Positions 31 to 28,254 of a stretch of DNA of 48,808 nucleotides are shown here, piece after piece (positions within the stretch are counted from its first letter, which is position 1; the number at the start of each line of letters is the position of its first letter). The position numbers and the translations under genes were made by a program. The DNA comes from Octopus bimaculoides (lineage: Eukaryota), in contig NC_068989.1 of the NCBI RefSeq assembly GCF_001194135.2, positions 74,891,839 through 74,940,646 on the forward strand, given 5' to 3'. The notes under the pieces are model-generated. The model was not told the DNA's origin and ran no database searches. It saw only the letters and a program-made list of their open reading frames with translations.

Positions 31-3000
31 ATGAAAGAGAATGTGAGAAAGACAGAGATATCACCAAAAAAGGAGCAACACAAGAGAGGGATGAAAAGGA
101 TCAGTGTGTCTCAGCTGGTTTGCGGAGGAAAATAGAGAATAATAATGCGGCTGAGATACATATTGACACTGAAAAGAAGAAAACTAACATTTTCACTACG
201 ACAGGGGTCATGAGGGTGATACTTACAATATATTTCGTGAAACAGTGATATCCTGACAGAGAAAACGTTGGATAATAATCATGGAAGTCAGTATTGTTGT
301 CAATTATATTGGCAGAGGAATTTAGGCGTTGCAGCGGCAGGTCACGAGGGAGAAGTTTATAAAAAATAGAAAACATTCTGAAAAAACAGTGTTACCATTA
401 TGTAAAATACATTGGTTACTTTGCATGGATAACAATATTTCTGTCACCGATATCCAATGTCCTCATTGCTGTGCAGACGTCGCAAGAACAGCCGCATACA
501 GCTCTGGCTAGATTTTCATTAAAAGTAAGGTGAGAGAATGTCATGAAAGGGGAGAAGGAAAGAGACAAAGAGAGCGAGTGTGAACGGCAGTGATATAACC
601 AGGAGAGTGGAAACCTATAACATGGAGTTCATCACAACTGCTTTGTGGGAAGTGGGTTGATCAGAGAACAATAATACGACTGAGGTAGATAGAGAAACAA
701 AAGAGAGAAAACCGTAACGTTATCACAAAAAGAAATGTCACGAGGGAAATATTTACAATATATACCAAATAGTTATATCCTTACGAAGAATACTTTGAAT
801 AATTTCCATGACAGGCAATATTGCTGTAACTGAAAGGCGGTGAGCTGACAGAAACGTTAGCACATCGGGTGAAATGCTTAGCGGTATTTCGTCTGCGCTA
901 CGTTCTGAGTTCAAATTCCGCCGGGGTCGACTTTGCCTTTCATCCTTTCGGGGTCGATAAATTAAGTACCAGTTACGCACTGGGGTCGATATAATCGACT
1001 TAATCCGTTTGTCTGTCCTTGTTTGTCCCCTCTGTGTGTAGCCCCTTGTGGGCAGTAAAGAAATAGGTATTTCGTCTGTCTTTACGTTCTGAGTTCAAAT
1101 TACGCCGATGTCGACTTTGCCTTCATCCTTTCGGGGTCGATAAATTAAGTACCAGTTGCGTACTACGGTCAATCTAATCAACTGGTCTCCTCCCCAAAAC
1201 TTTCGGCTCTTCTACCGAGAGTAGAAAAGAATATTGCTGTTACTGGTGCCCCAGATTCGGCATAGGAATTTAGATGTCGCCAGGACTTCCGCCTGCAATT
1301 TTATCTACACTTTCTATGAAACCAAGATAGGCATGACGTCATTAACAGAGAGCGACAGACAGACAGAGACAGGCAGAGACAGTGAATACAAGAGAGATAA
1401 GGGAAAACATATCACCGTGAGAGTGTCAATGAAAGAGAGGGCATATGAAGGTTCAGATATCGCAGATGTATTAAGGTAGAAAACAAAGAACTAAATTACG
1501 GGTGATAGAGAAAAAGAGAGAGAACAGTAACATTAAGACACGAAGGAAGAGTTTACAACATACAAAAAGCTATTTTGAAAATGGTGCTATCGTGGCAGAG
1601 AACATATTGGTTATTTTGCTTCGAAGAGAATATTGTTGTCACTGGTATACAAAGTATATTGCTGTCACTGGAATACAAAGTAAACCAGAGAATTCAGAAG
1701 TAACAAAATTTCTAGTGAAACCAGGATGGGCAGAATGTTGCTCTGGGTGACAGAAAAAGCGACATAGGAAAATAGTGTAAACGACAAAGATGTCATCAAA
1801 ACAGTGGCAATGAAAGAGTGATGCGAGTGCAATCAGTGTGTCGTTAGTGTCCTGAGGAAAATATCATAGAACATTCATACGTTTGAGACAGAGAGAGAGA
1901 AAATTGGAAAGGAAAGACGACAGTAATATTAAAATTAAGACCGGGCAACGGGTGAGAAATTGGAAATAAAAAGGAAACATTTCGAAAACCGTGATGATAT
2001 TGCTATCGCAGTAACAGCATACGTACAATGTGTAGCAAATATTTCGAAATACAGCGATATCCTTATGGAGAATACATTGGTTAATTTGCATTGAAGTTCA
2101 TACTGTTATTCCTGATATCCAGATTTGACATAAGAATTATAATTCTTGAAGGATCTCTGCCTGCAGCTGTAGCTAGATTTTTAGTGAAACCAGAATGGGT
2201 AAAATGTCATCAAGAGAGAGAAAGATAAAGATATTAACCATAGAGAGTAATACAGATTTTCAGTGAAACTAGGATGGGAAGAATATCATCAAGAGAGAAA
2301 TGGAAAGAGAAAAAGAGAGAATGTGTGAACAACGGTGATATTACAAACAGAAGAGCAACTTCTATTGGGATGAAAGTCGTCTGTGTGTCGCAGCTGTGTT
2401 TAGGATAAAAAAGACAGAGATAGATAGAGAAAGAAAAAGTGAGGAAACAGTAAGATTATAAGTGGGACAAGGGTGACGAGGAAGAAGTTAACTATAATTA
2501 GAAAAACATTCCGAAAAACCGTGATATCCTTACGGAAAATAGAATAGTTTATTTGAATGGGAAACTATATTACACTTATTGGTAGATTTTATTGGTAGGT
2601 TACAAGAGAGAGGAGTAGATGGGGATATCACCAAGAGGGTGTCAACGAAGGAGAGGTACGAAGATTGCTAGTATGTCACAGATGTGTTGAGTAGTAAACA
2701 AAGAACAATGAGACGGTGGTGAGAGAAGGAGTAAAAAGGGAGGAGAAAACAGTGTGATGCATATCGAGGATAAATTTGTTAATTTATATGCCATCATAGA
2801 TAAATAAATAATGATTCAGAATTGTGAAGTAGCAAGGATTTCCGGCTACGGCAGAAACTATGTTTCTACTTACACCAGGCTGGGCTGTATAGCATTAAGA
2901 AGGAGGGGGAAAGAGAAAGGACAGAGATATCCCCAACAGAGTGGCAACGAAAGAGGGGAACGAAGGTCTTCAGTATGTGGCAGCAGTGTTGAAGAAGAAA

Positions 3001-3735
3001 AATAAAGAATAATAATAAAAAGGAAAGAAAAGGGCAAAAAAACAGTAACATTAACACTAAGGAAGAGATGACAAGGGACAAATTTACAATACCTAGAAAT
3101 ATTTCATGAAACATTGCTATTTTGACGGAGAACATGTGTATTAATTTGCATGCAAAACAATATTTTTGTTACCGATGCCCAAAGTCGGTATGAAAGTTCA
3201 GAAGTCAGAAGGATTTTCGTCAACAGGTGTAGTTAGATTTTTAATGAAATATGTTAATGTAGAAAACAAAGAACCATAATACGGCTGAGTGAAAATAAAA
3301 GGAGAGAGGCGCAACGAAGTAGAAGGATACATTTTGTCAGTCTGTTATCGCTGTGTTGATGAAAACATTGATATCATTACAAAGAATGCATTGCTTAATT
3401 TTTGCATGATAAAGAATATTGTTCTTACCAATATCCAAACTTGGCTTCGGTGCTCGGAGTTCGCAAGAACAATCGCCGTTACTTGCTATGGCTAGATGTG
3501 AAGTAAAAGCAGGATGGGCACAATGTCATTGAAAGAGATGAGAGAAGAGAGACGGAGATAGTGAATGAGAACGACAGAGATATCGACAAGAAAGTGGTAT
3601 CAAATGACAAGGAGCAAAGTGGTTAATATGTCGCAGCCATTTTCCGGAATGAAAGCAGAGACTAATAAAGTGTTTTTGCTCGTAGTTTTGAAGGTGGTAT
3701 GTCTGAAAGCCGACAGTATCTAACAGTTTGTGCAT
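31..3735 (+). repeat. Purine-rich complex satellite array 1 (~300-400 bp diverged monomers)
   Basis: Anchors GCTAGATTT..GTGAAA..GGATGGG..AATGTCAT recur at ~507, 1705, 2170, 2255, 3230, 3490, and GATATCCTTACGG at ~777, 2057, 2522. The same diagnostic motifs recur in 18-28 kb. Confidence 0.9.
833..1229 (+). mobile_element. Dimeric SINE inserted in the satellite
   Basis: Head GGCGGTGAGCTGACAGAAACGTTAGC, core GTCGACTTTGCCTTTCATCCTTTCGGGGTCGATAAATTAAGTACCAGTT present twice, 16-bp TSD AATATTGCTGT(A/T)ACTG at 817-832 and 1230-1245. Confidence 0.85.
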
Positions 3736-3779
3736 TAAAATTCTCTCTAATGCTGAAGTTTGGAACAGGATATTCCATA

Positions 3780-6170
3780 CGTATATTATAGTAAATTTCT
3801 CTCTTCAGCATTCAAGATAGTAGAGAAAACAACGCTTTCAAATATTCCCAGTAGCTAAGTCTTTTAACCAACGGTATTTAATTGGTGAATGTTCTTTGTA
3901 ACCTTTTAATTTTTTCTATGAGACCGGATGAGTTAGGAGACCAAGCAAAAATCTAAGCTGCTCAGAACTCCATAGAGTAAACCTAACTACTGGTTCTCTT
4001 GTCACACCATTTTCAGCAACAGATGGCTTCAACCATGTAAGAGGTAAAAGAGCCATCCACTGAGTTTTCCTGAGATACCAAGATTCCTTAACGTATCAAG
4101 GTATATACAGTCAATGTCCTTTCCTCTCGAGAGATTATTAGAATAATGCTACGGCATTGTAATAGTTATGAAAGGTAACTTCGTCTAGTCCAAAAACTAT
4201 CTACGAAGTTGTTTTCAACAAGGTGTGCACTAATTCTATTTCAGACAATGCGTTTGATAATTTTAGATGTGTGAGATAGGAGGGAAACAGGTCTTTAGTT
4301 TTCAGCTTCAGTCCCGCTATCTTACTTTGTGTGTAGGTATTACTATTGCGTCTTTTAATAGTTCTGGCAATTCGCCGGTAACTAGCGACTTTTGAAATAG
4401 TATGTATGCTTAATTGTTTCACGAGGCTGTCTTTGCACGTTTTTAGTAGTGTGGCTAGGAGACCGTCTGGTCCAGATGCTGAGTTTGAATTTAGGTCATT
4501 AGCTGTAAGTTGAGTTCTGGGAACCAAAGAATTCATTTGGCCCGTATGTTATTTTGTTAACTATAGGTTGGGAAGAAGCTCTATCATAATGTCGACTCAA
4601 GAATGTGCATGTTTGTGATGTATCATTAGTTTATTTGTGATGTATCATTAGTATGTGGAGGCGCAATGGCCCAGTGGTTAGGGCAGCGGACTCGCGGTCG
4701 TAGGATCGCGGTTTCGATTCCCAGACCGGGCGTTGTGAGTGTTTATTGAGCGAAAACACCTAATGCTCCACGAGGCTCCGGCAGGGAATGGTGGCGAACC
4801 CTGCTGTACTCTTCCACCACAACTTTCTCTCACTCTTACTTCCTGTTTCTGTTGTGCCTGTAATTCAAAGGGTCAGCCTTGTCACTCTGTGTCACGCTGA
4901 ATTTCTCCGAGAACTACGTTAAGGGTACACGTGTCTGTGGAGTGCTCAGCTACTTGCACGTTAATTTCACGAGCAGGCTGTTCCGTTGATCGGATCAAGT
5001 GGAACCCTCGACGTCGTAAGCGACGGAGTGCCAACAACAATCATTAGTATATGATTCATTTTGATCCATTAGATAGCCAATCTGATTACTCGTAGATGAT
5101 TTTTGTTTAGCAAAGGAGAAATATTATAGAACTTAGAAATGAGGAGTGAGTCAGGTTTCATGTTAATTACGAGTTACCCTCTTTGAACCATATACAAATA
5201 ATTGTGGCCGGAAATAACTGTCGGAATGATCTAAACATTGTGAGTGAAGTCTATATTGGTGGTAAAGACTAAGTCGAGTATATTTCCCCCTAGTTGGACG
5301 GATAATGATCTACTGTATGAGGAAGTTTTTTAGTTGTATCGAAAAAAGCATTCATATCTCTCCTGTTCAGTTGCATAATTTCAGGCTGGATATAACCCTC
5401 AGGCCAGCTGAGATTAGGAAAACTAAAATTCCCAGCTAAAAGTACATTGGCCAGTCAGTTGGTCTCAATGACGTTTGGCTTATGAGCGACAAAGCATCTT
5501 TGAAGTGATCTCCGTGGCTAGCTGCATCAGGAAGACAGTAGGTAATACCTATGATCAAATTGGGGACAATCACGAGCATTATTAGTGTATCGCACACTAT
5601 GCTGGAGTGGCGAAGGAGGACATTTTTTCCCAGGTTTTCTTGGGTGAAAATTACTATTTCTCCTTGTTTCCATATTCTGTGATCAGTTCTGAATAGTACA
5701 AAACCTGACGTATGTACTTTCGCATCCAATATGTCTGGGGTCAGGTGCGTTTCACTTAGTAGTACACATATTGCCTTATCTCGCTGCACGAGGTCTCTCT
5801 CGCTGTGCAAGACCTCTAAGACATGATACTTATATTCAATTTGTGAAATGTGAAAGACCTTGTACATTCGGTATTATTATAGAGTTGAGTTTGTGGGTTA
5901 ATGACAGCAATGGTGTATGGTTGTGCATTGGGGTAATAGCAATGACTGGTGCTGTGTGAGAGCTAGAAGTTTGTTTTTTGTTTTTGTTTTTTTTTTGCCA
6001 GATTCATCACGGTTTGCGGCTGTTGATTTTACAGAAGATATCAGAGTGACTTCTGAGTTTCGATGTGTGGACCAACACTGCCACTGTAAGGGATATTTCT
6101 TCTGTAGATTTGGTGGTAGTTTGGAGTCATGCTTTTACTGGTGCATCAAGTCCCTAAAAGATTAATGAAG
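3780..6170 (-). mobile_element. Decayed CR1-like LINE, 5'/central part (AP endonuclease and start of RT)
   Basis: ORF 5436-5867 LLSETHLTPDILDAKVHTSGFVLFRTD is APE-like. ORF 4201-4536 has NSASGPDGLLATLLKTC. ~4030-4200 reads KDIDCIYLD..LRNLGISGKLSGWL (RT-like). Many stops and frameshifts. Confidence 0.75.
4655..5039 (+). mobile_element. Full-length tRNA-derived SINE with TSD
   Basis: A box TGGCCCAGTGG, B box GGTTTCGATTCC, (CAA)n tail, 11-bp TSD ATCATTAGTAT at 4644-4654 and 5040-5050. Nested in the CR1 remnant. Confidence 0.9.
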
Positions 6171-6571
6171 GGACAGTCACATATCAGAAATAATCTTTCA
6201 TGTTGAGAAAGCAGTAGATTTTAGGATTCCGGGTTATATATATAGTAGTATATAGGTGGTGGTGGTGGTGGTGGTGGTGGNNNNNNNNNNNNNNNNNNNN
6301 NNNNNNNNNNNNNNNNNNNNNNNNNNNNNNNNNNNNNNNNNNNNNNNNNNNNNNNNNNNNNNNNNNNNNNNNNNNNNNNNNNNNNNNNNNNNNNNNNNNN
6401 NNNNNNNNNNNNNNNNNNNNNNNNNNNNNNNNNNNNNNNNNNNNNNNNNNNNNNNNNNNNNNNNNNNNNNNNNNNNNNNNNNNNNNNNNNNNNNNNNNNN
6501 NNNNNNNNNNNNNNNNNNNNNNNNNNNNNNNNNNNNNNNNNAGTGGTGGTGGTGGTGGCGGTGGTGGTGGT

Positions 6572-6828
6572 AGTGGAAAAGCTAGAGACTGTATTGTCTA
6601 ATTGTTCTACTATTGAAGAGTCACTGCCAATGCCGATCATGTTGTCGTTGCTATTGTTTAGTTGTGGTAAGAGTAAGAGCAGTAGAACATGATGACAATG
6701 ATGATGATGGTGACGAAGGGTCACTTGTGCTATTTCGAGAAAATGATATAGCTACACAGAGAAGGACTCTTGATCGTGGAGTTTAATATTTCATTAATTG
6801 TGCTAGTATCGAGGAGTGGCCGTAGTTT
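6572..6828 (-). repeat. Left arm of a ~260-bp inverted repeat (partner 8138-8412)
   Basis: Reverse complement aligns almost throughout with 8138-8412. The right arm has an extra ~11 nt (GATGATCTATT). Confidence 0.85.
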
Positions 6829-7972
6829 TCGTTGTTTTGTTTTTGTTATATTGTTGTTACACACACACACACACACATATATATACATATATATATCCTC
6901 CTCTCTTCCTCTCCCCTCCCATACCCATCTTCCCCCTCTCTTACATCCACCTTCCCCTTCTCCCTCCTCGTCAACACCCTCTCATAAGCTCATCCCACTA
7001 CACCCCAACACACTCCTACTCTACCTTCCCACTCCACCCCATCCAATTCCTTACACCCACCACCCACCCCAACCNNNNNNNNNNNNNNNNNNNNNNNNNN
7101 NNNNNNNNNNNNNNNNNNNNNNNNNNNNNNNNNNNNNNNNNNNNNNNNNNNNNNNNNNNNNNNNNNNNNNNNNNNNNNNNNNNNNNNNNNNNNNNNNNNN
7201 NNNNNNNNNNNNNNNNNNNNNNNNNNNNNNNNNNNNNNNNNNNNNNNNNNNNNNNNNNNNNNNNNNNNNNNNNNNNNNNNNNNNNNNNNNNNNNNNNNNN
7301 NNNNNNNNNNNNNNNNNNNNNNNNNNNNNNNNNNNNNNNNNNNNNNNNNNNNNNNNNNNNNNNNNNNNNNNNNNNNNNNNNNNNNNNNNNNNNNNNNNNN
7401 NNNNNNNNNNNNNNNNNNNNNNNNNNNNNNNNNNNNNNNNNNNNNNNNNNNNNNNNNNNNNNNNNNNNNNNNNNNNNNNNNNNNNNNNNNNNNNNNNNNN
7501 NNNNNNNNNNNNNNNNNNNNNNNNNNNNNNNNNNNNNNNNNNNNNNNNNNNNNNNNNNNNNNNNNNNNNNNNNNNNNNNNNNNNNNNNNNNNNNNNNNNN
7601 NNNNNNNNNNNNNNNNNNNNNNNNNNNNNNNNNNNNNNNNNNNNNNNNNNNNNNNNNNNNNNNNNNNNNNNNNNNNNNNNNNNNNNNNNNNNNNNNNNNN
7701 NNNNNNNNNNNNNNNNNNNNNNNNNNNNNNNNNNNNNNNNNNNNNNNNNNNNNNNNNNNNNNNNNNNNNNNNNNNNNNNNNNNNNNNNNNNNNNNNNNNN
7801 NNNNNNNNNNNNNNNNNNNNNNNNNNNNNNNNNNNNNNNNNNNNNNNNNNNNNNNNNNNNNNNNNNNNNNNNNNNNNNNNNNNNNNNNNNNNNNNNNNNN
7901 NNNNNNNNNNNNNNNNNNNNNNNNNNNNNNNNNNNNNNNNNNNNNNNNNNNNNNNNNNNNNNNNNNNNNNNN

Positions 7973-8021
<49 letters not shown>

Positions 8022-8048
8022 GTATCTATGTGTACGTGTTTGTGTGCT

Positions 8049-8083
<35 letters not shown>

Positions 8084-8137
8084 GTATATATATCACTGTG
8101 TGTGCGTGTGCGTGTGTGCATATGTACATGTATATGT

Positions 8138-8412
8138 ACTATGGCCACTCCTCGATACTAGCACAATTATTGAAATATTAAACTCCACAATCAAAAGCCC
8201 TTCACTGTGTAGCTATCTCATTTTCTCGAAATAGCACAAGTGACCCTTCGTCACCATCATCATCATTGTCATCATGTTCTACTGCTCTTACTCTTACCAC
8301 AACTAAACAATAGCAACAACAACATGATCGGCATTGGAAGTCACTCTTCAATAGTAGAACAATTGATGATCTATTAGACAACACAGTCTCTAACTTTTCC
8401 ACCACCACTACC
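8138..8412 (+). repeat. Right arm of the inverted repeat (partner 6572-6828)
   Basis: GGCCACTCCTCGATACTAGCACAATT...CTTTTCCAC matches the reverse complement of 6572-6828. Confidence 0.85.
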
Positions 8413-8421
8413 ACAATAAGG

Positions 8422-8504
8422 GTAAACATTGATACACATACACGCACACACATGTACACGCAAAAGCACACACGCACATACACACATAAACACACACGCA
8501 TGTT

Positions 8505-8515
<11 letters not shown>
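8422..8515 (+). repeat. Third copy of the ~90-bp CA-rich segment found upstream of both GPCR genes
   Basis: GTAAACATTGATACACATACACGCACACAC..ACACGCAAAAGCACACACGCA also occurs at ~14853-14935 and ~33665-33725. Confidence 0.75.
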
Positions 8516-8536
<21 letters not shown>

Positions 8537-8547
8537 TGAATTTAATG

Positions 8548-8588
<41 letters not shown>

Positions 8589-9583
8589 TAGTATATTGCC
8601 ACTTAAGTGTGGCTGACCCCTAGGGGTGGATGTTACTGTTGCTTTTAGCCCCAGGAGGACATCTCCTCCAGCTGGCTTATCGACACACGACTGTGTCCTG
8701 TTTGCCAAGGGAGTTATCCCTCTCACCTCGACCAGCAGCACGAACNNNNNNNNNNNNNNNNNNNNNNNNNNNNNNNNNNNNNNNNNNNNNNNNNNNNNNN
8801 NNNNNNNNNNNNNNNNNNNNNNNNNNNNNNNNNNNNNNNNNNNNNNNNNNNNNNNNNNNNNNNNNNNNNNNNNNNNNNNNNNNNNNNNNNNNNNNNNNNN
8901 NNNNNNNNNNNNNNNNNNNNNNNNNNNNNNNNNNNNNNNNNNNNNNNNNNNNNNNNNNNNNNNNNNNNNNNNNNNNNNNNNNNNNNNNNNNNNNNNNNNN
9001 NNNNNNNNNNNNNNNNNNNNNNNNNNNNNNNNNNNNNNNNNNNNNNNNNNNNNNNNNNNNNNNNNNNNNNNNNNNNNNNNNNNNNNNNNNNNNNNNNNNN
9101 NNNNNNNNNNNNNNNNNNNNNNNNNNNNNNNNNNNNNNNNNNNNNNNNNNNNNNNNNNNNNNNNNNNNNNNNNNNNNNNNNNNNNNNNNNNNNNNNNNNN
9201 NNNNNNNNNNNNNNNNNNNNNNNNNNNNNNNNNNNNNNNNNNNNNNNNNNNNNNNNNNNNNNNNNNNNNNNNNNNNNNNNNNNNNNNNNNNNNNNNNNNN
9301 NNNNNNNNNNNNNNNNNNNNNNNNNNNNNNNNNNNNNNNNNNNNNNNNNNNNNNNNNNNNNNNNNNNNNNNNNNNNNNNNNNNNNNNNNNNNNNNNNNNN
9401 NNNNNNNNNNNNNNNNNNNNNNNNNNNNNNNNNNNNNNNNNNNNNNNNNNNNNNNNNNNNNNNNNNNNNNNNNNNNNNNNNNNNNNNNNNNNNNNNNNNN
9501 NNNNNNNNNNNNNNNNNNNNNNNNNNNNNNNNNNNNNNNNNNNNNNNNNNNNNNNNNNNNNNNNNNNNNNNNNNNNNNNNNNN

Positions 9584-9629
<46 letters not shown>

Positions 9630-9631
<2 letters not shown>

Positions 9632-9960
9632 CACAACGTTTCGACTGATTTGCTCTCTAGCATTCATCAGGTGTCCTGGTAGAATTTTGAACCCAACCCT
9701 GGGTTATCATTCTGAAGGTATTTTTGCCGATATTATTATTTATTCAAAGTAATGCCTGGAATTGAACTCGCAATCTTGGGGTTAGTAGCCCGTGCTCTTA
9801 ACCCTTACGTCATATACCCGTGGGCAATTATAGAGTGACTTTTAGGACTTATAAATCTAATATTTTTCTATCCTTCCTTAATACAGGCTCCCATATTCTA
9901 CTCATATCTGGAGAGTAAATCAGCCGAAACTTTGTGGTAACGACAAACAAGATAAGGACA
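9630..9960 (-). mobile_element. Repeat with tRNA-like head and degenerate hammerhead-like tail
   Basis: Minus strand reads GGGTTAAGAGCACGGGCTACTAACCCCAAGATTGCGAGTTCAATTCC (tRNA-like), then CAC-CTGATGA...GAAACGTTGTG at 9631-9674. Confidence 0.5.
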
Positions 9961-10525
9961 CATATCCATCAAATGTAAATAATGTAAACACAAGTTTGTC
10001 TTCCTTTCTTAAACTGCCTGGAACCCTATTTTATATATTTTCAATCCATCTTTACATTCTAAGTTCAAATTCTGTTGAGGTTGATGTAATCGACTTAACC
10101 CCTCTTCCGAAATTGTTGTCTTTCTCCCAAAATTTGGAATCAATATTACTCTATCAATTGACTCTTTCACATTTTCTGTCACTTAGCAATCGATTGCTCC
10201 CAATATCGACCATTTTGCATTTGCATTTGACTCTCTTCTTCTATGTTTATATCCGTGCCCGTATGTACGATCATATATGCATAAAACATACATATATGCG
10301 TGTGCGTATATTCGTAAAACTTCATGCATACACGTACACACACACATTCACTTATACACCTAAACATCTATATCTACACACACACACACAATCATATACA
10401 TACATACATACATACATACATACATACATACATAAATACATACGCACATACATACATACATACATGCATACATACATACATACATACATAGATACATACA
10501 TACATACATACATACATACATACAT

Positions 10526-10743
10526 AGAAACGTTAGCACGCCGGGCGAAATGCTTAGCGGTATTTCGTCTGCCGCTACGTTCTGAGTTCAAATTCCACCG
10601 AGGTCGACTTTGCCTTTCATCCTTTCGAGGTCGATTAAATAAGTACCAGTTACGCACTGGGGTCGAGGTAATCGACTTAATCCGTTTGTCTGTCCTTGTT
10701 TGTCCCCTCTGTGTGTAGCCCCTTGTGGGTAGTAAAGAAATAA
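10526..10743 (+). mobile_element. 5'-truncated SINE inside a (TACA)n microsatellite
   Basis: Same body as 833-1065, flanked on both sides by TACA repeats. Confidence 0.85.
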
Positions 10744-15846: not shown

Positions 15847-15934
15847 AAATTCTCTTCTTAGTAGTGCCGTGTACTAATTGAGTTTGCCTTGCTGCAAAAG
15901 TAAAATACCTCCAATTTTCAGTGTTTAGCTTCAA

Positions 15935-16150
15935 ATTGATTTCAAATTCTGGTACAAGGCCAGCAAGTCTGGGGGTAGAGGACTAGTCGATTCCATTGAC
16001 CCCAGTGCTCAACTTGTAACTATTTTATCGACCCCCAAAAGGACGGAAGGCAAAGACAACCTCGGTGGAATTTGAACTCAGAACGTAAAGACGGATAAAA
16101 TGCTGCGAAGCATTTGCCCGGTCTACTAACGATTCTGCCAGCTCGTCGCC
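15935..16150 (-). mobile_element. SINE (833-type family) upstream of paralog 1
   Basis: Reverse complement of the SINE head and core. Same position and flanks as the copy at 33835-34073. Confidence 0.8.
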
Positions 16151-19100: not shown

Positions 19101-22100
19101 AGAGACAGAAAGAGAAAGAGACAGAAAGACACAGAGTGGGAGTGACAATAACAGAAATATCACCAAGAGAGGGCCAACGAATAAGAGGGTTGAATGTCGT
19201 CAGAATGTTTCGCCTGTGTTGAGGAAGAGAACAGAGAACAATAATACTACTGAGACAAGAAAAGAACAAAAAGAAAAGGGCAAAAACAGTAGCATTATCG
19301 CTGAGAGGTGGAAGAAGTTTGAAAAAATAGAAATCGTATAGATAAACAGTTATATCCTTACGGAGAATATATTTGTTAATTAGCATGGAAGTCAAAATTT
19401 GAATGGAAAACAATATTGCTGTTTTTACTAGATTTTAAGTTAAAACAGGACAGAATTTCATTAAGACAAAGAGAGAAAGAGACAGAGAGACAGAGAGGGG
19501 AAGTGACAATGGCAAAGATATCACCAAGAGAGGGCCAACGAGTGAGAAGTTTGAAAGTCGTCAGAAGAATAGATTTGTCAATTAAGTTGGAAGTCAATAT
19601 TGCTGTTACTGCTATCCCAGAATCGGCACACAAATTTAAATGTTACAAGAACTTCCGCCTACAGTTTCAGCTAAATTTATAGTGAAATCAGGAAAAGCAG
19701 AAGATGAATATGAAGAGAGAAGAAAAAAAAGAGTGAGAGCAGAAAAGAGAGAGTGAGAGAAGGACAAAGATATCAAAGAGAAAGGCAACAAAGGTTAGTA
19801 TGTTTTAGATGAGTTAAGGTAGGAAACAAAGAAGTACGACTGAGAGAAAAATAAAAGGAGAAAGGAGCAACGAAGGAGGGGAATGGATTTTGCCAGTATG
19901 TTATCGCTGTGTTGAGGAAAACAGTGATATTATTACAAAGAATACATTGCTTAATTTGCATTGTAAAGAATATTGCTCTTACCAATACCCAAAATCGTCC
20001 TCGGTGTTCAGACGTCGCAAGAACAATCGCCGTCACCTCCTATAGTTAGATGTGAAGTTAAAGCAAGATGAGCGGAATGTCATTGAAAGAGAGGAGGAGA
20101 GAGAGGGAGACAGGGAGAGTCAATGAAAACGACAGAGATAATGACAAGATAGTGGAAACGAATGACAAGTGGCAAAAGGGTCAGTATCACGCAGCCTTTT
20201 TTCCGGAAAAAAAAAACAGAGAATAATAGTACTGCTGAGACAGAGACAGAGAAGAAGAAAAAGGGAGAATACTGCAACATTATCATTAAGAGCGAGGTCA
20301 CAAGGAAGATATATACAATATATAGTAACTATTTCGAAATACAATGATATCCTTATGAGGAATACATTTATTACCTGGCATAGAAGCTAATGCTGCTTTT
20401 CCTAATATCCAGAGTTGGCATAAGAATTTAGGTTCTGGAAGGATTTCCACCTGCAGCTGTAGCTAGATTTTTAGTGAAACCAGGATGTGTACAATGTCAT
20501 TAAGAGAAAGAAGGCTAAATATATTACCGATAGAAAGTAATACAGATTTTCAGTGCAAATAGGACGGGGAAAATGTCATCAAGAGAGAGAGAGCTACATG
20601 GACATATCACCAAGAGAGTGTCAACGAAGATTGCTAGCACGTCGCGAGTGAGTTCACGAGTAAACAAAGAGCAATAATATGGTAGTGAGAGAAGGTGCAA
20701 AAAGAAAGAGAAAACAGTATGATCCTTATCGAGTATACATATGTTAATTTGCATGCAATCGCCGACAGACAAAGGATGATTGAGAATTGCAGAAGCTATA
20801 GTTCTACTTACACCAGGATGGACCGAATAACATTAAGAATAGGGGAGAAAAACCGGAAGAGAAAATGACAGAGATATCACCCACAGTGTGGCAACGAAAC
20901 AGAGGAACGATGTTTGTCAGTATGTGTCAGCAGTGTTGGGGAAGAAAATAAAGAACAAAAATATAAAAAAATGAAAAGGAGAGTAAATCGTAACATTACC
21001 ATTAAGGTATTTGTGACAGGGGACAGATTTACAATACCTAGAAAATATTTTAAGAAACTTAGCTATTTTTACAGAGAACATATGTATTAATTTGTATGCA
21101 AGGCAATATTTTTGTTACCGATGCCCAAAGTCGGTATGAGAATTCAGAAGTCGGAAGGATGTCTGGCAACAGCTGTAGTTAGATTATTAACGAAATTAGG
21201 AGGGCCAGAATGTTATTCAGAGAGAAAGGGAAAGAGACAAAGAGAGAATGTGTGAACGACAGAGATATTACCAATAGAGGAGCAAAATTCTAGTGGGGTG
21301 AATGTGGTCAGTGTGTCGCAGCTTGGTTGAGGGGAAAAAAAGACAGAAATAGACAGAGAAAGAAAAGGAGAGGAAACAGTAGGATTCTCAGAGAGACATG
21401 GGTCACGAGGAAGAAGTTAACAATATATAAAAAAACGTTTCCAAAGACAGTGACATCCTTACTGAAAATACAATGATTGATTTTAATTGAAATCTATACT
21501 ACTGTTATTGCTAGATTTTAAGCTAAAACAAGAGAACAGAATTTGATAAAAACAGAGAGAGAGATAGAAAGACGTTGATCTAGCAAGCGGGGCCTCATAT
21601 CAGTGAGGGGGGCCGGTGCGCATTGATACCTTCGACAGGTAGGCCTCGAAGCAGCGCACATTCTCTCCTGATGACCCCATACACTTGCTGGCTTTCGGTG
21701 GCACTCACCAAGCGAGTGCCACCGAATGGGAGGGTTGAAAGTCGTCAGAATGTCTCACCTGTGTTGAGGAAGAGAACAGAGAACGATAATACGAATGAGT
21801 AAGATACAGAAAAAGAAAAGGAGAAAAATAGGAGCATTATCATTGAGAGGGGTTTCACGTGGAAGAAGTTGGCAAAATATAGAAAAACAGTGATATGCAT
21901 ACGAAGAATACGTTTGTTAATTGGCATGGAAGTCAATATTACCGTTACTGATATTGCTGAGTCGCTTTAGGAATTAAGATGTAACAAGGACTTAGCTAGA
22001 TTTTTAGTGAAAACATGATGGGGACTATGTTATTGAGAAAGAGAGGAAAAAAGAGAGAGAGAAGGACAAAGACATCAAAGAGGGAGACAACGAATGTTAG

Positions 22101-22110
22101 TATGTTTTAG

Positions 22111-23223
22111 GGATCTAGTTGGTTTGGCTGCCAGCATTTCAAACATTAAAGTTTATCGAAAATTGTAAAATTTGACGCAGTAGTATACTTTTCCAAGCTG
22201 AATTGCTGGAGTTATTTCTTTTTTCTCAAGAAAAATGTTGTTTTTAAAAAGCTATAGGAGTTTGAAGTTTGATCATTTGGAAGAATTAGATGAAAGTTCT
22301 CCGGTAATTGTCTTTCATGCAAATAAATGTTTGTTAATTTTAAAAAACTGCCATCAAAATCTTATGAAATGACAATGTTCTAAAAAGATGTACATGTTTA
22401 TATGTTACGTATATGAAATAAAAATGTGAACAAAATATGCTTAAAAAACAATCATTTAATCATCCAATAAGCAACACATTACAAAATATTTTTAAAATTA
22501 AAGCGAAAGTTAGAAATACATTCAATCAATTTCTCAAACAAATCAGGTTTGGTATCTCCTGCGCCACATAAATTCACAGATATATGAATCTACAATGGAA
22601 CGGTGAGTGCCACAGTATCGTTTATTACCTCACTTCACAGAGGCCCACGTACTCTCCACTTGTTGAGTGTGAGTACCATCTTTTTGGTTAACAGAAAAAA
22701 GAAAGGGTAAACAACACGTCTTTTGTAGTTTAAAGCATCCATTATGCATTTAATGCTATAGCACGAACTTAAAGATTTATCTAAAAACAAGATAGCACAT
22801 TACAAGTGAAATATTTTTTAAAAAACAAACATTTTGTTGACCAGTTCATTAATAACGAAAGTTTGCAATGCATTCAATCAATTTCTCGAACAAATCACAA
22901 TTTTCATATCTCCTGCGTTACAAATGCTTAATTGGCAACAGATAGGTAAAACAAGTGGTTTCAGTATATTTGTCAGCACGTTCTTTCTCGTAGACAAAAG
23001 AGCTCTGCTTGTTACTATGGAAACATGCATGAATGTGTCTGCGGTTTACGATTGGGTAAAATTACCAAAATTTTCATACTTTAATCCCTAACAACTCTTT
23101 ATTTATTGATTTATAACGAAAATGATTTTCACGTCATTCATTGGCTAATAAAAGTGTTTCATTACACTGAATATGAAATCAATTCGAACAAAATTGATGC
23201 TGGCAGATAAACCGAATAGATCC
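22111..23223. mobile_element. Non-autonomous TIR element A (GGATCT termini, Merlin-like?)
   Basis: TIRs GGATCTAGTTGGTTTGGCTGCCAGCAT / GGATCTATTCGGTTTATCTGCCAGCAT. Flanks TGTTTTAG / TGTTTTAT (7/8, TSD-like). No ORF. The superfamily call rests only on GG ends plus an 8-bp TSD. Confidence 0.75.
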
Positions 23224-25191
23224 TGTTTTATTGAGCACATCTGCGACATACTAGCAATCGTCGCACCGCTCCTTCGTTGACACTCTCTTGGTGGTTCTTC
23301 CCATCCTAGTTTCACAGAAGATCTGTATTACTATCTATGTTTATCCCTTTCTTTCTCTCTTAATGACATTCTATCCATCCTGGTTTCGCTAAAACTCTAA
23401 CAATAACTGCAGATGCAAATCCTTCCAGAATCTAAATTCTTTGCCAACTCTGGGTATCAGGAACAACATGGGCTTCCATATAAATTAACTAATGTATTCT
23501 TCGGAAGGATATCGGTGTATTTCAAAATATTTACTATACACTGTATATATCCTCCTTGTGAACTCTCTCTTAGTGATAATGTTACTGTATTCTCTCTTTC
23601 ATTTCTCTCTCTGTCTCAGCCGTATTATTATTCTCTACTTTCTTCCGCAAAACAGTTGCAACATACTGACCACTTTGCTCCTTGTCACTTGTTTCCACTC
23701 TCTTGTCGCTCTCTCTGTCGTTATAACTCACTCTCCCTTCTCTCTCTCTCACACTCTTTCCCCCTCTCTTATAATGGCATTCTGCCCATCCTGCTTTAAG
23801 TTCACCTCTTGCTATAGGAGGTAACGGCGATTGTTCTTGCGACATCTGAACACATACTGACAAAATTCATTCTTCTACTTCGTTGCGCCTCTCTTCTTTT
23901 ATTTTCTCTCAGCCATATTATTTGTTCTTTGTTTTCTACCTTAACACGTCTAAAACATACTAATCTCCGTTGTGACTGTCTTTGATAATTTTGTCCTTCT
24001 CTCTATCTCTATCTTTTCCGCTCTCTCTCTTTTTTTTTTCTGCCTTCCTTAATAACATATTTCCATCATGGTTTCACTAAAAATCTAGCTAAACCTGTAG
24101 GTGAACGTTCTTGCCGCATCTACATTCCTCTGCCGTCTCTGGGGTATCAGCAACAGCAATATTGACTTCCATGCTAATTGACAAACGTCTTCTTCGTAAC
24201 GATATAACTGTTTTTCGAAACGGTTTCTATATTTCGGGCACTTCCGTCACATAATCCTCCCTCAGCGATAATGTTACTGTTTTTTGTCCTTTTCTTTTTG
24301 TCCTTTACGTGTCTCAGTCGTATTATTGTTCTCTGTTCTCTTCCTCAACACAGATGAGACAGTCTGACGACTTCAACCCACTCATTGGCCCTCTGTGGGT
24401 GATATCTCTGTCATTGTCACTCACCCTCTCTGTCCCTCTGCCTTTTCTTCTGTTTTAATCAAATTTATGTCCTCCTATTTTAACTCAAAATTTTGCAATA
24501 ACAGCAATATAGTTTTCCAATCAAATCAACAATTGTATTTCCCGTAAGGATATCATTGTTTTTCGAAACGTTTTTCTATATATTGGTAACTTCTTCCTCG
24601 TGACTCCTGTCTCACTTATAATCTTACTGTTTCCTCTCCTTTTCTTTCTCTGTCTATCTCTCTCTCTCTCTCTCTCTCTGTTTTTTCCTCAACACAGCTG
24701 CAGCACACTAAACGTTTTCATCCCAATAAAAGTTGCCCCTCTGTTGGTAATATCTTTGTCGTTCACACATTCTCTCTTTGTCGCTTTCACTTTTCACTCT
24801 TGATGACATTCTGCCCCTCCTCTTTTCATTAACAATCTAAATACAGCTGTCGACGGAAATCCTTCTGACTTCTGAATTCTCACACCGACTTTGGGCATCG
24901 GTAACAAAAGTATTTTCTTGCATGCAAATTAATATATATGTTCTCTGTAAAAACAACAATATTTCTTGAAATGTTTTCTAGGTATTGTAAATCTGTTCCA
25001 TGTCACCCCTCCCTCAATGGTAAACTTACTGTTTTCTTCTCCTTTCTTTCTTTTTTATTATTCTTAGAACGACTGAGATATCGACAAGAGAGTAGAAACG
25101 AATGACAACGAGCAAAGTGGTCAGTATCTCGAAGCCGTTTTTCGGAAGAAAGCACAGAAAAACAATAATATGGTTGAAACTGAGAGAGAAA

Positions 25192-26113
25192 GGATCTTTG
25201 TAGTTTTCGTTACTGTCTACAATTTTGTTCCAGGTGTTTTCTAATTTGGTATGTGGTTTAAGTTTTGTATACTAATTATGAAAGGGAAATTCATTTTTCC
25301 TATAATTCCATAATTAAAAAGTTATCAGCCTTTAAAGTTTTCAAAATTTTGGTATTTTAGCCAATCAGAAGCAAGTATTTTACACAACACTGTGGCGAAG
25401 AACTCTGTTTCCATAGCAACCAAAGATGCTGCGTATACGCACAATGAGTGTAACCACCGCGTGTTCTAAAATATGTTTTCATAACAGACAGAATTCCACT
25501 GTTCCATGATTGACTCATCTTTGTGAATTTATGTGACGAAGGAGATATGAGAAAGATAATTTATTTTATAAAATCCTAGAGTATATTGCAAACTTTCGTT
25601 CTTGAATTTTTTAACAAATAAATGTCTTTTTTAAGCAAGTTTTTGATTGCTATTTCTAGCAACTCCTGTGGATTTGTTTGTAGCTTTTAAATATTTAATT
25701 TGCTCCTGAATATTTTAATGTCTTTTACTGTTAACTTAGCTCGTGTATATTTTAATATTTTGATTGTTATTTCTACCAACATCTGCTGGTTTGTTCGGAG
25801 CTTTTAAATATTTAATTTGCTTGCGAATGTTTAACGTTTTTCATTGTTTACTGTAGCTACTTTAATGTTTCAACATGCCGGTGCACGCCTTGCCCTTGAT
25901 GTTAATAGAGGCAGCGAACGCGCTGTTTTCTGATTGGCTGAAAATTCTAAATATCATCAAGCTATGAACACCAAATTTTCGCAAATTTGTTTTTTTGTTT
26001 TTTTTAATAAATGGACAACAAATTTGGATTCAAAGTCAAAAGTGGCATCTATAGGATACATTAAAAATGTTTTGAAAAATTTTGACATGCAGTGACGAAA
26101 GCCACAAAGATCC
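25192..26113. mobile_element. Non-autonomous TIR element B (GGATCT termini, Merlin-like?)
   Basis: TIRs GGATCTTTGTAGTTTTCGTTACTG / GGATCTTTGTGGCTTTCGTCACTG. Flanks GAGAGAAA / GAGAGGAG (6/8). Symmetric subterminal AGCCAATCAGAA / TTCTGATTGGCT, and an internal ~117-bp tandem duplication. Confidence 0.75.
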
Positions 26114-27634
26114 GAGAGGAGAATACAGTAACATTATCACTAAGGATCACGAGGAAGATATATATATATACACTATAAAGTAAATATTTCGAAATACAGC
26201 GATATCCTTACGGAGAATACATTGGTTAATTTGCATGGATGCTCATACTACTATTCCTGATATCCAGATTTGGCATAAGAATTTAGATTCCTGAAGGATT
26301 TCTGCCTGCAGCTGTAGCTAGATTTTTAGTGAAACCAGGATGAGTAGAATGTCATTAAGAGAGAGAAAGATAAAGATATTACCGATAGAGAGTAATACAG
26401 ATTTTCAGTGAAACTAGGATGGGAAGAATGTTATTAAGAGAGGGAGGACAATACGGACATATCACCAAGAGGGTGTGAACGAAGGGGAGATACGAAGATA
26501 GCTAATATGTCGCAAATGTGTACACTAGTAACAAAGAACAATGATACGGTGGTGAGAGAAGGAGAAAAATGGTAGAGAAAACAGTGTAATGCTTATCGAG
26601 GATACATTCGTTAATTTGCATGCCATCACAGATAGACATACGACGATTGAGAATTGCAAAGTAGCAAGGATTTCCACATACGGTGGAAGTTACAGTTCTA
26701 CTTACACCAGGATGGGCCGAATAACATTAAGAATAGGGGAGAAAAACAGGAAGAGAAATGACAGAAATATCACCAACAGAGTGGCAACGAAACAGAGTAA
26801 CAAAGGTGGTCAGTATGTGGCAGTAGTGTTGAGGAAGGAAATAAATAACAGTAATAAAAAAGAATGAAAATGGGAGAAAACAGCAGCACTACCACTAATG
26901 GAGGGTTGATAGGGGACAAATTTACAATACCTAGATAATATTTCAAGAAACGTTGCTATTTTTACGGAGAACATATGTATTAATTTATATGCAAGGCAAT
27001 ATTTTTGTTACCGATGCCCAAAGTCTGTATGAGAATTCAGAAGTCAGAAGGATGTCTGCCAACAACTGTAGTTAGATTTTTAATGAGATGAGGAGGGGCA
27101 GAATGTTATTCAGAGAGAAAGGGAAAGAGACAAAGAGAGAGATATTACCAATAGAGGAGCAACTTCAAGTGGGGTGAAAGTGGTCAGTGTGTCGAGGAAA
27201 AAACAGAGAGAGATAGACAGAGAAAGATAGACAGAGAAAGAAAAGGAGAGAAAGCAGTAACGTTACCAGTGAGACAGGGGTCACGGGGAAGAAGTTAACA
27301 ATATATAGAGAGAATATATAGAGAGACAGAGAGAGAATATGTGACCGACAGAGATATTACCAATAGAGGAGCAACTTCTATTGGGATGAAAATGATCAGT
27401 ATGTCGTAGCTACGTTGAGGAAAAAAGACAGAGATAGGCAGAGAAAGAAAAAGAGAGGAAACTGACATTATCAGTGAGACAGAAATCACGAGGAAGAGGT
27501 TAACAAGAAATAGAAAAATGTTCCGAAAAGCAGTGAGATCTTTACGGAAAATACAATTGTTGATTTGAATAGAAATTTATATTGGACTAATTGCTAGATT
27601 TTAAGTTAAAACAAGACAGAATTTGATTAAAACA

Positions 27635-27691
<57 letters not shown>

Positions 27692-28254
27692 NNNNNNNNN
27701 NNNNNNNNNNNNNNNNNNNNNNNNNNNNNNNNNNNNNNNNNNNNNNNNNNNNNNNNNNNNNNNNNNNNNNNNNNNNNNNNNNNNNNNNNNNNNNNNNNNN
27801 NNNNNNNNNNNNNNNNNNNNNNNNNNNNNNNGACAGGCAGACAGACAGGCAGACAGACAGGCAGACAGACAGGCAGACAGACAGGCAGACAGACAGGCAG
27901 ACAGACAGGCAGACAGACAGGCAGGGTGAGTAACAATGACAAAGATATCACTCAGAGAGGGCCAACGAATGAAAGGGTCGAAAGTCGTCAGAATATATCA
28001 ACTGTATTGAGGAAGAGAACAGAGAATAATAATACGACTGAGAGAGATACAGAAAAAGAAAAAGAACATAAACAGTAGCATTATCGCAGAGAGGTGAGGA
28101 TCATATGGAAGAAGTTTGCAAAATATACAAACATTTGTTAATTAGAATGGAAGTCAATATTGATACTGATATTGCAGAGCCGGCATAGGAATTTAGATGC
28201 AGCAAGGAGTTTCACCTACAGGTTTAGCTAGATTTTTAGTGAAACCATGATGGC

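Follow-up and report, generated by a model that had tools for sequence, protein, structure and literature searches.

The window analysed here, a stretch of 48,808 nucleotides on Octopus bimaculoides chromosome CM046609.1 (about 74.89–74.94 Mb), contains two receptor genes, both on the minus strand, and two arrays of diverged tandem repeats, laid out as gene 2 – array 2 – gene 1 – array 1 (Table 1). Both genes match PF00002 (7tm_2; E = 4e-27 and 7e-26), and their closest relatives carry PF00002 and PF28443 and are named Mth or Mth-like; DUF8401, the Mth-type N-terminal ectodomain, is seen together with 7tm_2 in these relatives. The two genes are Methuselah-like class-B GPCRs of octopus group 4, the octopus-specific expansion described by Ritschard et al. 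2019 (PMC6408891). Our conclusion that this family grew by local tandem duplication is the same as theirs, whereas their paper reports neither an accompanying tandem repeat nor a defined duplicated unit. Gene 1 is collinear with O. sinensis P0008 (90.2% over 2.3 kb) and O. vulgaris Va (87.2% over 3.06 kb), and is a mosaic of the kind left by gene conversion. Gene 2, in which the reading frame is open on either side of an assembly gap, falls into an ortholog group with O. sinensis P0004 and O. vulgaris Vb.

Table 1. Repeat arrays, inserted elements, flank blocks and receptor genes in the window (HOR, higher-order repeat; A–F, monomer types)
Feature	Position	Strand	Remarks
Array 1, three diverged untyped monomers	44–834	+	nhmmer hits 44–330, 339–578, 579–834
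SINE-like retroposon, two partial tandem copies, splitting a monomer	835–1221	+	~17-bp target duplication AATATTGCTGT(A/T)ACTG
Array 1, four further untyped monomers or fragments	1222–1995	+	profile hits
Array 1, typed part: A, (C-tail) D, B, C, F, A-head	2019–3668	+	
Flank blocks Z 4006–4634, Y 5139–5752, X 6544–6861	4006–6861	+	spans gap 6281–6541
Inverted second X copy (8138–8414) fused to gene-upstream fragment (8422–8529, similar to 14855–14960)	8138–8585	+	
Gene 1, intact intronless Methuselah-like class-B GPCR	12530–14506	-	658 aa from METVF...
Array 2 block I, HOR copy 1: A B c(148 bp) D E e ? F	18009–20124	+	
Array 2 block I, HOR copy 2: A a B C D E + head of next monomer	20125–22110	+	
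T1, 1.1-kb MITE-like element	22111–23223	.	27-nt terminal inverted repeats (GGATCTAG...)
Array 2 block II, inverted partial HOR: C D E f ? f A b	23226–25054	-	minus-strand reading
Array 2 block III, head of A monomer, split from tail by T2	25066–25191	+	profile positions 3–126
T2, 0.9-kb MITE-like element	25192–26113	.	24-nt TIRs (GGATCTTTGT...)
Array 2 block III continued: A-tail ? B C D' D (gap 27692–27831) E	26104–28264	+	
Gene 2, paralogous Methuselah-like GPCR	31326–33469	-	broken by gap 32815–33046

The repeat was delineated with an nhmmer profile of 413 positions, built iteratively from one monomer, which gives 44 matches in the window (lowest E value 1e-92), arranged head to tail along the arrays at 44–3668 (+), 18009–22061 (+), 23226–25054 (-) and 25066–28264 (+). 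Neighbouring monomers mostly lie 0–25 bp apart and the profile hits are 240–413 bp long; TRF detected no 290–420 bp array in the window because the copies are too diverged. Six monomer types of about 370 bp each can be distinguished, with identities of 78–90% within and 56–72% between types, and one strand of the monomers is purine-rich, giving strong purine/pyrimidine strand asymmetry and GA-rich junctions. The higher-order tandem-repeat structure is real. The fixed cyclic order that a first-pass annotation of this DNA had claimed for array 2 reads A>B>C>D>E>F and is obeyed there in 19 of 19 typed transitions, and the annotation's recurrence (18180 to 20401) agrees exactly with the A-to-A offset of 2221 bp found by self-BLAST (18022–18295 versus 20243–20515), a HOR period of about 2.2 kb. 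Clustering of monomers by HOR position, which that annotation had set as its own test, holds across species, with the nearest neighbour being of the same type for all typed long monomers (55/55). The annotation drew the satellite as one span of 31–28250; both arrays lie inside it, but about 14 kb (3669–18008) is non-satellite. Array 1 uses the monomer types of array 2 at 2019–3668; its part at 44–1995 is untyped.

Array 1 continues beyond the left edge of the window. Its first three monomers share 56–71% identity with all other monomers, and the seven untyped monomers of 44–1995 together are 55–71% identical to everything else. The typed part follows the cyclic order with units skipped, and its monomers are 83–89% identical to same-type monomers of O. 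vulgaris and O. sinensis. Monomer profile positions 250–275 overlap on the two sides of the SINE-like insertion, an element also present at 10526–10742, 29902–30128, 15985–16159 (-) and 33904–34080 (-), and in most loci. In array 2, T1 is placed at the left breakpoint of inverted block II. T2, a distant relative of T1 that holds a 117-bp internal tandem duplication, interrupts an A monomer whose head ends at profile position 126 and whose tail starts at 117. The full order of block III is a[T2]A ? B C D D E, and 20264–21429 matches 26118–27307 at 80.4% identity (self-BLAST).

An origin of the arrays or of the inverted block in mis-assembly of the gap-rich O. bimaculoides scaffold is hardly credible, even with ten N gaps in the window and a placement of array 1 and of the second X copy (X') that is non-canonical compared with the other species. 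The copies differ by 13–22% and are therefore not collapsed or duplicated reads. The stretch 15808–27691 has no gap, so that a single contig holds block I, all of block II (the inverted one) and the larger part of block III, and the same arrays occur in two independent gapless assemblies of other species. Gap 6281–6541 is situated inside a GGT/GTG microsatellite, and its flanking Y and X blocks match X–Y of O. vulgaris L007 and O. sinensis L008 in the same orientation, which supports order and orientation across it. Gap 15164–15807 is situated inside an (AT)n tract; its flanks (14296–14909 and 15846–16159) are collinear with an ungapped paralogous copy (33122–33720 and 33765–34080), which supports the order here also, the gene-1 copy having ∼0.9 kb of extra or undefined content relative to the gene-2 copy. 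Gap 27692–27831, bordered by (AG)29 and a 12-mer repeat, has a D monomer on its left (ending at 27670) and an E monomer on its right (starting at 27933); the HOR register D>E is kept across it, and the gap may still hide whole HOR units. No collinear counterpart was found for the flanks of gaps 7075–7972 and 8746–9583, and the segment between them (8138–8585) appears to be a rearranged piece of the unit described below. An artefact could at most concern how some contigs are ordered and would leave the repeat untouched.

The same monomer types and order are found in three arrays of O. vulgaris and three of O. sinensis; types and cyclic order are common to 10/10 arrays in the three species, and the type order predates the species split. 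O. vulgaris L007 has the layout V1-Va-V2-Vb-V3-Vc, with each array ending ∼1.45 kb from a receptor gene, and the L006 array is V3 at 99–100%. O. sinensis L008 holds S1-P0008 and, in addition, an inverted gene with S2. The arrays of both species lie 0.36–1.45 kb upstream (5') of the receptor gene in a constant orientation, antiparallel to it. For V1, V2, V3, L006 and S2 the gene-proximal end is the same F monomer, about 1.42–1.45 kb from the gene, while S1 adjoins a conserved ∼350-bp promoter-proximal region of P0008. In each of the three species the arrays are preceded by the same X-Y-Z flank, giving the conserved unit order X-Y-Z-array-gene. The window's Z/Y/X blocks match O. vulgaris L007 (3394–4000/2354–2946/1600–1919 and 32242–32836/31157–31749/30284–30623) and O. 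sinensis L008 (5380–5975/4315–4907/3387–3691) at 83–86% in both species. Proximal S1 and P0008 are collinear with window positions 19891–18018 and gene 1, including the 148-bp truncated C monomer (L008 8708–9619 versus window 18960–18018, 82.9%; L008 8119–8584 versus 19891–19422, 90.9%). Judged by these alignments, HOR copy 1 of block I is orthologous to S1, and array 2, which lies 3.5 kb upstream of gene 1 and 3.1 kb downstream of gene 2, belongs to gene 1 as the counterpart of S1-P0008. The first-pass description of one array 3' of each gene is literally correct in the window, where both genes are on the minus strand, but the conserved position, as seen in O. vulgaris and O. sinensis, is 5'.

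Array and gene have been copied together. A single O. vulgaris L007 HSP (6973–13613 versus 34356–40981; 6.7 kb, 90.4%) passes through array end, spacer, gene and downstream flank, which were therefore duplicated as one segment, and a second alignment (7257–10504 versus 55658–58841, 90%) also runs through satellite and gene. Flanking matches in L007 (1889–4432 versus 30694–33276, 95%; 13725–17160 versus 40978–44363, 94%) extend the unit to roughly 20–29 kb (21–29 kb array-to-array). Within the window, homology between the gene copies (11939–16159 versus 30772–34080) stops short of the arrays. It had been suggested in the annotation that array plus receptor may be the duplicating unit, and tandem repeats were noted there to promote unequal crossover. 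That both belong to one duplicating unit is supported, but the unit is much larger, with homology extending well beyond the arrays on both sides. No observation points to the repeat as the driver of duplication.

The array-bearing genes form one clade in an NJ tree. Every clade gene in O. vulgaris and O. sinensis has an array upstream, and Va, Vb, Vc, P0004, P0008 and gene 1 each carry one. At least eight other paralogs of the same cluster have none, and the monomer profile gave no hit in L001, L002, L004, L005 or L009, or around Vd. A monomer profile search also found no array within 15 kb upstream of gene 2, and the idea that an array accompanies each GPCR paralog has to be dropped in favour of one clade only. 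If array 1 belongs to a gene, that gene would lie beyond the left edge of the window; no gene following array 1 with its X-Y-Z flank is visible, and in L001 there is none for 10 kb before P0002 (∼6.1 kb between being unseen). The absence of an upstream array at gene 2, together with array 1 lacking a visible gene, requires loss, rearrangement or scaffold mis-order.

The diverged, 'monomeric' part of array 1 resembles the edges of large satellite domains, as would be expected of a genome-wide satellite (e.g. pericentromeric or dispersed) whose adjacency to receptors is incidental. Such a family is nevertheless highly improbable: 10/10 arrays sit at corresponding sites of homologous units and came there through duplication, no isolated copy away from such sites occurs in the ∼262 kb scanned, the surroundings of the at least eight other paralogs included, and, as a weak additional point, a search of the protein collection with an ORF through the monomer found nothing. 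In these ∼262 kb the array looks like a passenger of segment duplication rather than a genome-wide satellite. Also very unlikely is an origin in a transposable element that carried the array as its internal tandem repeats and X-Y-Z as its remainder, and that landed beside the ancestral gene or, repeatedly, beside paralogs. Mollusc satellites borne by Helitron or MITE elements exist, octopus genomes are TE-rich and the array always occurs with the same X(-Y-Z) flank. However, no terminal repeats, target duplications or other element termini were found bounding X-Y-Z-array, there are no dispersed copies in the region scanned, the Y ORF has no Pfam domain, and searching X, Y, Z, T1, T2, the SINE and the spacers with the monomer profile yielded no match (E<=10). 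Between units, homology carries on well past the supposed element, into the gene and the sequence downstream of it, so that the copies arose by segmental duplication, not transposition.

Comparable cassettes are known in primates. The human 19p12 cluster of ZNF91-type zinc-finger genes is reportedly interspersed with beta-satellite blocks (Eichler et al. 1998, Genome Res 8:791, cited in PMC2671837). As in that cluster, HOR-structured satellite blocks lie between tandem paralogs in the octopus, satellite and gene share one duplicated cassette (with unbroken homology through both and shared junctions in L007), and block size varies at orthologous positions in related species; the same likenesses hold for the Y-chromosomal DUX4-related family with its beta-satellite blocks (PMC2671837). 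The octopus monomer of about 370 bp is unrelated to the 68 bp beta-satellite, and its arrays are tiny (1.4–10 kb) and known only from this cluster, whereas beta-satellite is a genome-wide pericentromeric/acrocentric family. With primate alpha-satellite, to which the first-pass annotation had likened the repeat, it shares head-to-tail monomer types in fixed cyclic order, clustering by HOR position and not by neighbourhood, and a diverged 'monomeric' edge (44–1995 of array 1). It differs in that alpha-satellite HOR copies are 95–100% identical while those of the octopus, at 78–87%, are not homogenised, in having only 1–4.5 copies per array, in lying between genes in euchromatin with no sign of a link to centromeres, and in HOR types that are conserved across species rather than turning over. 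Short euchromatic satellite arrays near genes are also familiar from Drosophila 1.688 and Tribolium TCAST, and few-monomer arrays in gene-rich euchromatin are a point of likeness. Those families are dispersed at many loci and form large heterochromatic blocks, however, and the octopus copies, known from one gene cluster, have instead spread by segmental duplication. Euchromatic satDNAs have been reported in a beetle as well (PMC11049206).

The arrays have decayed. Same-type copies within array 2 are only 78–87% identical, about as diverged as orthologues between species, and therefore show no ongoing homogenisation; the HOR copies are broken up by one SINE, two MITE-like elements and one inversion. 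Orthologous identities are 83–91% for arrays, 83–86% for X/Y/Z and about 88–90% for coding sequence, so that the arrays diverge at a rate similar to neutral flanks, although gene conversion confounds these figures (gene 1 is mosaic, and the O. vulgaris units share 88–98% identity). The array is a relic and, judged by these comparisons, probably a passenger. This bears on the proposal that it is a functional cis-element (an enhancer or silencer in repeated form, a boundary, or a nucleation site for heterochromatin or small RNAs) choosing the expressed paralog and kept by selection in every unit. Its presence upstream of every clade gene in O. vulgaris and O. sinensis in constant orientation and at similar spacing, its being kept at every unit across three species, the S1 array adjoining the promoter-proximal region ∼350 bp from the start codon (the ancestral position), the type order retained from before the species split and the strand asymmetry with GA-rich junctions are all consistent with such a role. 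So is the finding that co-localised group-4 genes differ in expression, for which duplicated regulatory elements were raised as a possibility (Ritschard et al., PMC6408891). We nevertheless consider it unlikely: constant position and orientation follow automatically from co-duplication, orthologous arrays diverge as much as adjacent non-coding blocks, no conserved box was found along the monomer, array length and array-to-gene distance (0.36–3.5 kb) vary, transposon insertions and an inversion are tolerated, and O. bimaculoides gene 2, open on both sides of its gap, has no upstream array.

Taken together, it is likely that the repeat is an old, no-longer-homogenised HOR carried passively in the segmental duplication unit of one receptor clade. 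We infer a single origin, with the six-type repeat having arisen once in the Octopus lineage, immediately 5' of an ancestral Methuselah-like class-B receptor gene. It would afterwards have been carried as a neutral passenger inside the tandem unit of X-Y-Z flank, array, gene and downstream sequence; unequal crossing-over or non-allelic recombination between adjacent units may have produced the duplications and inversions of this unit. Each new receptor copy would inherit an array on unit duplication, which explains the nearby array of every member of the clade. Local unequal exchange, deletion, growth of junction microsatellites, transposon insertion and one inversion would then have altered array length and content, with the A–F order still recognisable.

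Receptor choice in vertebrate chemoreceptor clusters, where it is based on repeats or heterochromatin, offers a loose parallel to a more specific proposal, to which we attach only a slight probability: that selection maintains the purine-rich HOR array as a cis-regulatory module close upstream of each promoter, acting as a boundary or as a heterochromatin/small-RNA nucleation site. If so, each tandem paralog would have its own expression domain, or the paralogs would be expressed in a mutually exclusive manner, and the conservation of monomer order across Octopus would reflect function and not slow decay.

The six-type repeat in the window is real. Self-BLAST recovers a diverged family at 1-3700 and 18000-28260 in both orientations, and a 413-position profile, iterated starting from a single monomer, gives 44 matches with E-values down to 1e-92 that tile two arrays (see table). 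Pairwise comparison distinguishes six monomer types (A-F), with identities of 78-90% within and 56-72% between types, and in array 2 each of the 19 typed transitions moves one step forward in the cycle. The A-to-A offset measured by self-BLAST, 2221 bp, is the recurrence value put forward in the first-pass annotation. In array 1, seven strongly diverged, untyped monomers at 44-1995 are accompanied at 2019-3668 by A, D, B, C, F and an A-head, which is the cycle of array 2 with units skipped. The monomer strand is 61-67% purine in the arrays compared with 50% in the surroundings.

Coordinates of arrays, receptor genes, mobile elements and units
Feature	Sequence	Coordinates	Strand	Description
Array 1	window	44-834 and 1222-3668		head-to-tail tiling by profile
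Array 2, block I	window	18009-22061	+	profile tiling; A B c D E e ? F, then A a B C D E
Array 2, block II (inverted)	window	23226-25054	-	profile tiling; C D E f ? f A b
Array 2, block III	window	25066-25192 and 26104-28264	+	profile tiling; A-head, inserted element, A-tail, then B C D D E
Gene 1	window	12530-14506	-	intronless ORF
Gene 2	window	31326-33469	-	intronless ORF, gap-interrupted
T1, MITE-like	window	22111-23223		27-nt terminal inverted repeats, start GGATCT
T2, MITE-like	window	25192-26113		24-nt terminal inverted repeats, start GGATCT
SINE-like copy	window	835-1221		interrupts array 1 monomer; ~17-bp target duplication
SINE-like copies	window	10526-10742, 29902-30128
SINE-like copies	window	15985-16159, 33904-34080		within the duplicated gene-upstream block
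SINE-like copies	L001, L002, L007			many further sites
Arrays of O. vulgaris	L007	4576-7726, 33283-35112, 54774-56130		82.6-kb gapless locus
Unit of O. sinensis	L008			X-Y-Z-S1-P0008
Partial unit of O. sinensis	L008	11947-16299		inverted; truncated receptor (N-terminal ~370 aa only) and own array S2, tail-to-tail with P0008

TRF at default settings detected no array in the window: the copies are not similar enough, and a period of 2.2 kb is beyond the 500 bp that it allows. Searches of the window with ARAGORN and with Rfam at gathering threshold also came back empty; the monomer, which holds no tRNA-like gene, and the SINE-like element therefore fit no curated RNA family. Along the monomer no conserved box stands out (major-base frequency is flat, 0.66-0.87), and a sub-period of ~130 bp was rejected, its local score being 23 against a shuffle mean of 17.2 (SD 2.2, maximum 27). 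The monomer has no match at E<=10 to the SINE-like element, to T1 or T2, to the flank blocks X, Y and Z or to the spacers, and a protein search with a 128-aa ORF crossing it, an indirect and uninformative genome-wide probe, found no match. A literature search turned up no description of an octopus satellite and, judged from the literature rather than from Repbase or Dfam, the monomer family appears to be undescribed.

Both window genes encode class-B receptors (7tm_2). Their relatives are the Octopus 'Methuselah-like' receptors (7tm_2 and DUF8401), all held by one chromosome per species, and the fetched loci contain at least nine such genes at 74.75-74.93 Mb in O. bimaculoides. The octopus-specific group-4 expansion of these receptors was ascribed to tandem duplication by Ritschard et al., with no repeat mentioned (PMC6408891). 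A gap at 32815-33046 puts 232 N inside the coding sequence of gene 2, where O. sinensis has 252 bp at the matching place; going by this length, gene 2 may be intact, and the public gene call (466 aa, 100% identical to the window) begins at an internal Met because of the gap. That product is located on O. bimaculoides chromosome CM046609.1 (GCA_001194135.2), which puts the first base of the window at about 74,891,839. Relative to O. sinensis P0004 (L006 10001-11992), gene 1 is a mosaic, its 7TM (3') half being 91.9% identical at the DNA level and its ectodomain (5') half 76%, and the identity of gene 2 to P0004 is uniform at about 88.5%. The mosaic suggests either that gene conversion has acted on the 7TM half among paralogs or that the ectodomain has diverged fast. 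P0001 was considered as a 'gene 0' left of the window and rejected, as it sits in tail-to-tail orientation at the distant end of L001, the locus to the left. Pfam searches of the ORF in block Y (5436-5867) and of 37789-38175 found no domain, and a translation of block Z runs into stop codons.

In the two other Octopus species the arrays lie on the 5' side of the receptors. Each of the three O. vulgaris arrays ends ~1.45 kb upstream of a receptor (Va, Vb and Vc, respectively), and the orthologue of the third, 99-100% identical, is found 1.4 kb upstream of P0004 in the O. sinensis locus L006. Two more O. sinensis units are located ~80-100 kb upstream of this array on the same chromosome (L008); the inverted partial unit with S2 is 94.8% identical to O. 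vulgaris unit 2, so units can invert as well as duplicate. All O. vulgaris and O. sinensis arrays consist of types A-F in one cyclic order and are antiparallel to their own gene. That two independent gapless assemblies hold the repeat excludes an assembly artefact as the source of the repeat itself.

Paralogous homology in O. vulgaris is unbroken across array, spacer, gene and downstream flank (6973-13613 vs 34356-40981, 90.4%) and reaches many kb further on both sides; array and receptor were therefore copied together, with a unit period of 21-29 kb. This upholds the first-pass proposal that array and receptor duplicate together, and the duplicating unit does contain both, but it is far larger than the gene plus array envisaged there, and the conserved place of the array is 5' of the gene rather than 3'. 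Nothing shows the repeat to be the cause of the duplications, because the unit homology continues past the arrays. Vc (L007 57582-59432) aligns to gene 1 only as several frame-shifted pieces and is therefore a pseudogene or affected by assembly errors; O. sinensis has an intact counterpart in P0004. The O. vulgaris model P0028 (L007 10001-72629), a 62-kb 'hypothetical protein', is a chimera that combines a Va exon with TE-like exons in repeated copies and further pieces; none of its exons lies within an array, so it gives no hint of transcription.

In a neighbour-joining receptor tree the array-bearing genes all fall in one clade, which comprises two orthologue groups (gene 1/Va/P0008 and gene 2/Vb/P0004), indicating that duplication of the unit predates the separation of these species. 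No array lies within the fetched flanks of P0002, P0001, P0006, P0009, P0010, P0011, a third L005 gene, P0003 and Vd (the fourth L007 gene, orthologue of P0003/P0002); the repeat marks this clade only, and does not accompany every paralog as had been supposed. A genome-wide satellite whose adjacency to receptors is incidental is unlikely: 10 of 10 arrays are homologous in position, and the monomer profile found no match anywhere else in the ~262 kb scanned. Carriage by a transposon is likewise unlikely, as neither termini nor, within those ~262 kb, dispersed copies were found.

The window departs from the canonical layout. The X-Y-Z blocks that precede the O. vulgaris arrays also adjoin array 1 (6861-4006). 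The proximal part of S1 together with P0008 is collinear with 19891-18018 and gene 1 (83-91% identity), and even an odd C monomer truncated to 148 bp is shared. This makes S1 the orthologue of block I and assigns array 2 to gene 1 rather than to gene 2, which has no array across 15 kb upstream by profile scan of the window. Array 1 with its X-Y-Z flank points left, out of the window; ~6.1 kb separate the window from L001, and the 10 kb of L001 beyond contain neither satellite nor gene ahead of P0002. Either O. bimaculoides has undergone rearrangement or partial loss of a unit, or this gap-rich scaffold has contigs in the wrong order. Between gaps 7075-7972 and 8746-9583, whose flanks have no collinear counterpart, 8138-8585 carries an inverted second X copy (91% to 6561-6826) fused to a 108-bp piece of the gene-1 upstream region (8422-8529 vs 14855-14960, 90.7%); this is either what is left of a unit after rearrangement or deletion, or a contig put in the wrong place.

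The window has 10 N gaps and numerous microsatellites, with five gaps inside the studied region. Gap 6281-6541 lies within a GGT/GTG microsatellite, and the flanking Y and X blocks are collinear with O. vulgaris and O. sinensis; gap 15164-15807 lies within (AT)n, and its flanks are collinear with the paralogous sequence upstream of gene 2, where there is no gap; and gap 27692-27831 falls in GA-rich simple sequence between D and E monomers, across which the repeat register is kept. Blocks I-III of array 2 up to 27691 form a single gap-free contig. A degenerate 0.7-kb ACAT/AT-rich compound microsatellite occupies 41348-42073, and similar simple repeats border many window gaps.

Orthologous identities between O. 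bimaculoides and the other two species are 83-91% for arrays, 83-86% for X, Y and Z, 72-78% for the downstream flank and about 88-90% for coding sequence, so the arrays evolve like their neutral neighbours. This bears on whether the array is a selected regulatory element of the receptor genes: its position and orientation are conserved, but both follow from co-duplication, and the array sequence is unconstrained. Units are 88-98% alike within O. vulgaris, as against about 80% for the two window units; gene conversion and lineage-specific duplication both act, which makes precise dating unsafe.

The arrays look old: same-type monomers within array 2 are only 78-87% identical, hence homogenisation is not ongoing, and the arrays have been interrupted by insertions. 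The SINE-like retroposon (~220 bp, starting GGCGGTGAGCTGACAGAAACGTTAGCAC) is abundant, with copies 74-94% alike, some of them shared at orthologous or paralogous positions. T1 and T2 are related (internal similarity 72-78%), and the fetched loci yielded no further copies. The left breakpoint of inverted block II falls exactly at T1, and T2, which cleanly splits an A monomer, lies 126 bp past the right one; aberrant transposition of these elements, or recombination involving them, may have produced the inversion. Segment 11704-11938 (235 bp) recurs beside a SINE at L001 149-383, ~18 kb away on the same chromosome, with 97.9% identity; its window copy runs right up to the edge of the gene-1 duplicated block (11939). 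It is much younger than all other sequence compared and probably a recently active element. An unclassified dispersed repeat of ~390 bp at 39873-40262 has several copies in both orientations in L001, L002, L006 and L007 (80-87%).

Taken together, it is fairly likely that the arrays are a relic higher-order repeat (HOR), which would have arisen upstream of an ancestral receptor and since been copied as a hitch-hiker inside a tandem segmental-duplication unit. Monomer tiling and fixed type order resemble HOR satellites, whereas the degree of homogenisation does not. In behaviour the closest parallels are the human 19p12 ZNF cluster, with its cassettes of gene plus beta-satellite (Eichler 1998, as cited in PMC2671837), and the DUX4-related Y cluster. 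As it stands, this is a tidy, unsurprising instance of repeat hitch-hiking in segmental duplication. If the array were regulatory, it would tie tandem repeats to the way in which cephalopod receptors diversified in expression. The main value of the repeat is as a duplication-unit marker and a trans-species fossil HOR. It is a rare case of an HOR that has kept its monomer types and their order across species instead of turning them over, and the arrays are therefore useful for studying HOR decay after homogenisation stops. Truncated monomers, inserted transposons and type order provide derived characters shared across species. The octopus-specific Methuselah-like expansion thereby gains a concrete anatomy, growth by a cassette of ~20-29 kb, and the repeat provides a built-in marker with which to recognise its copies and put them in order.
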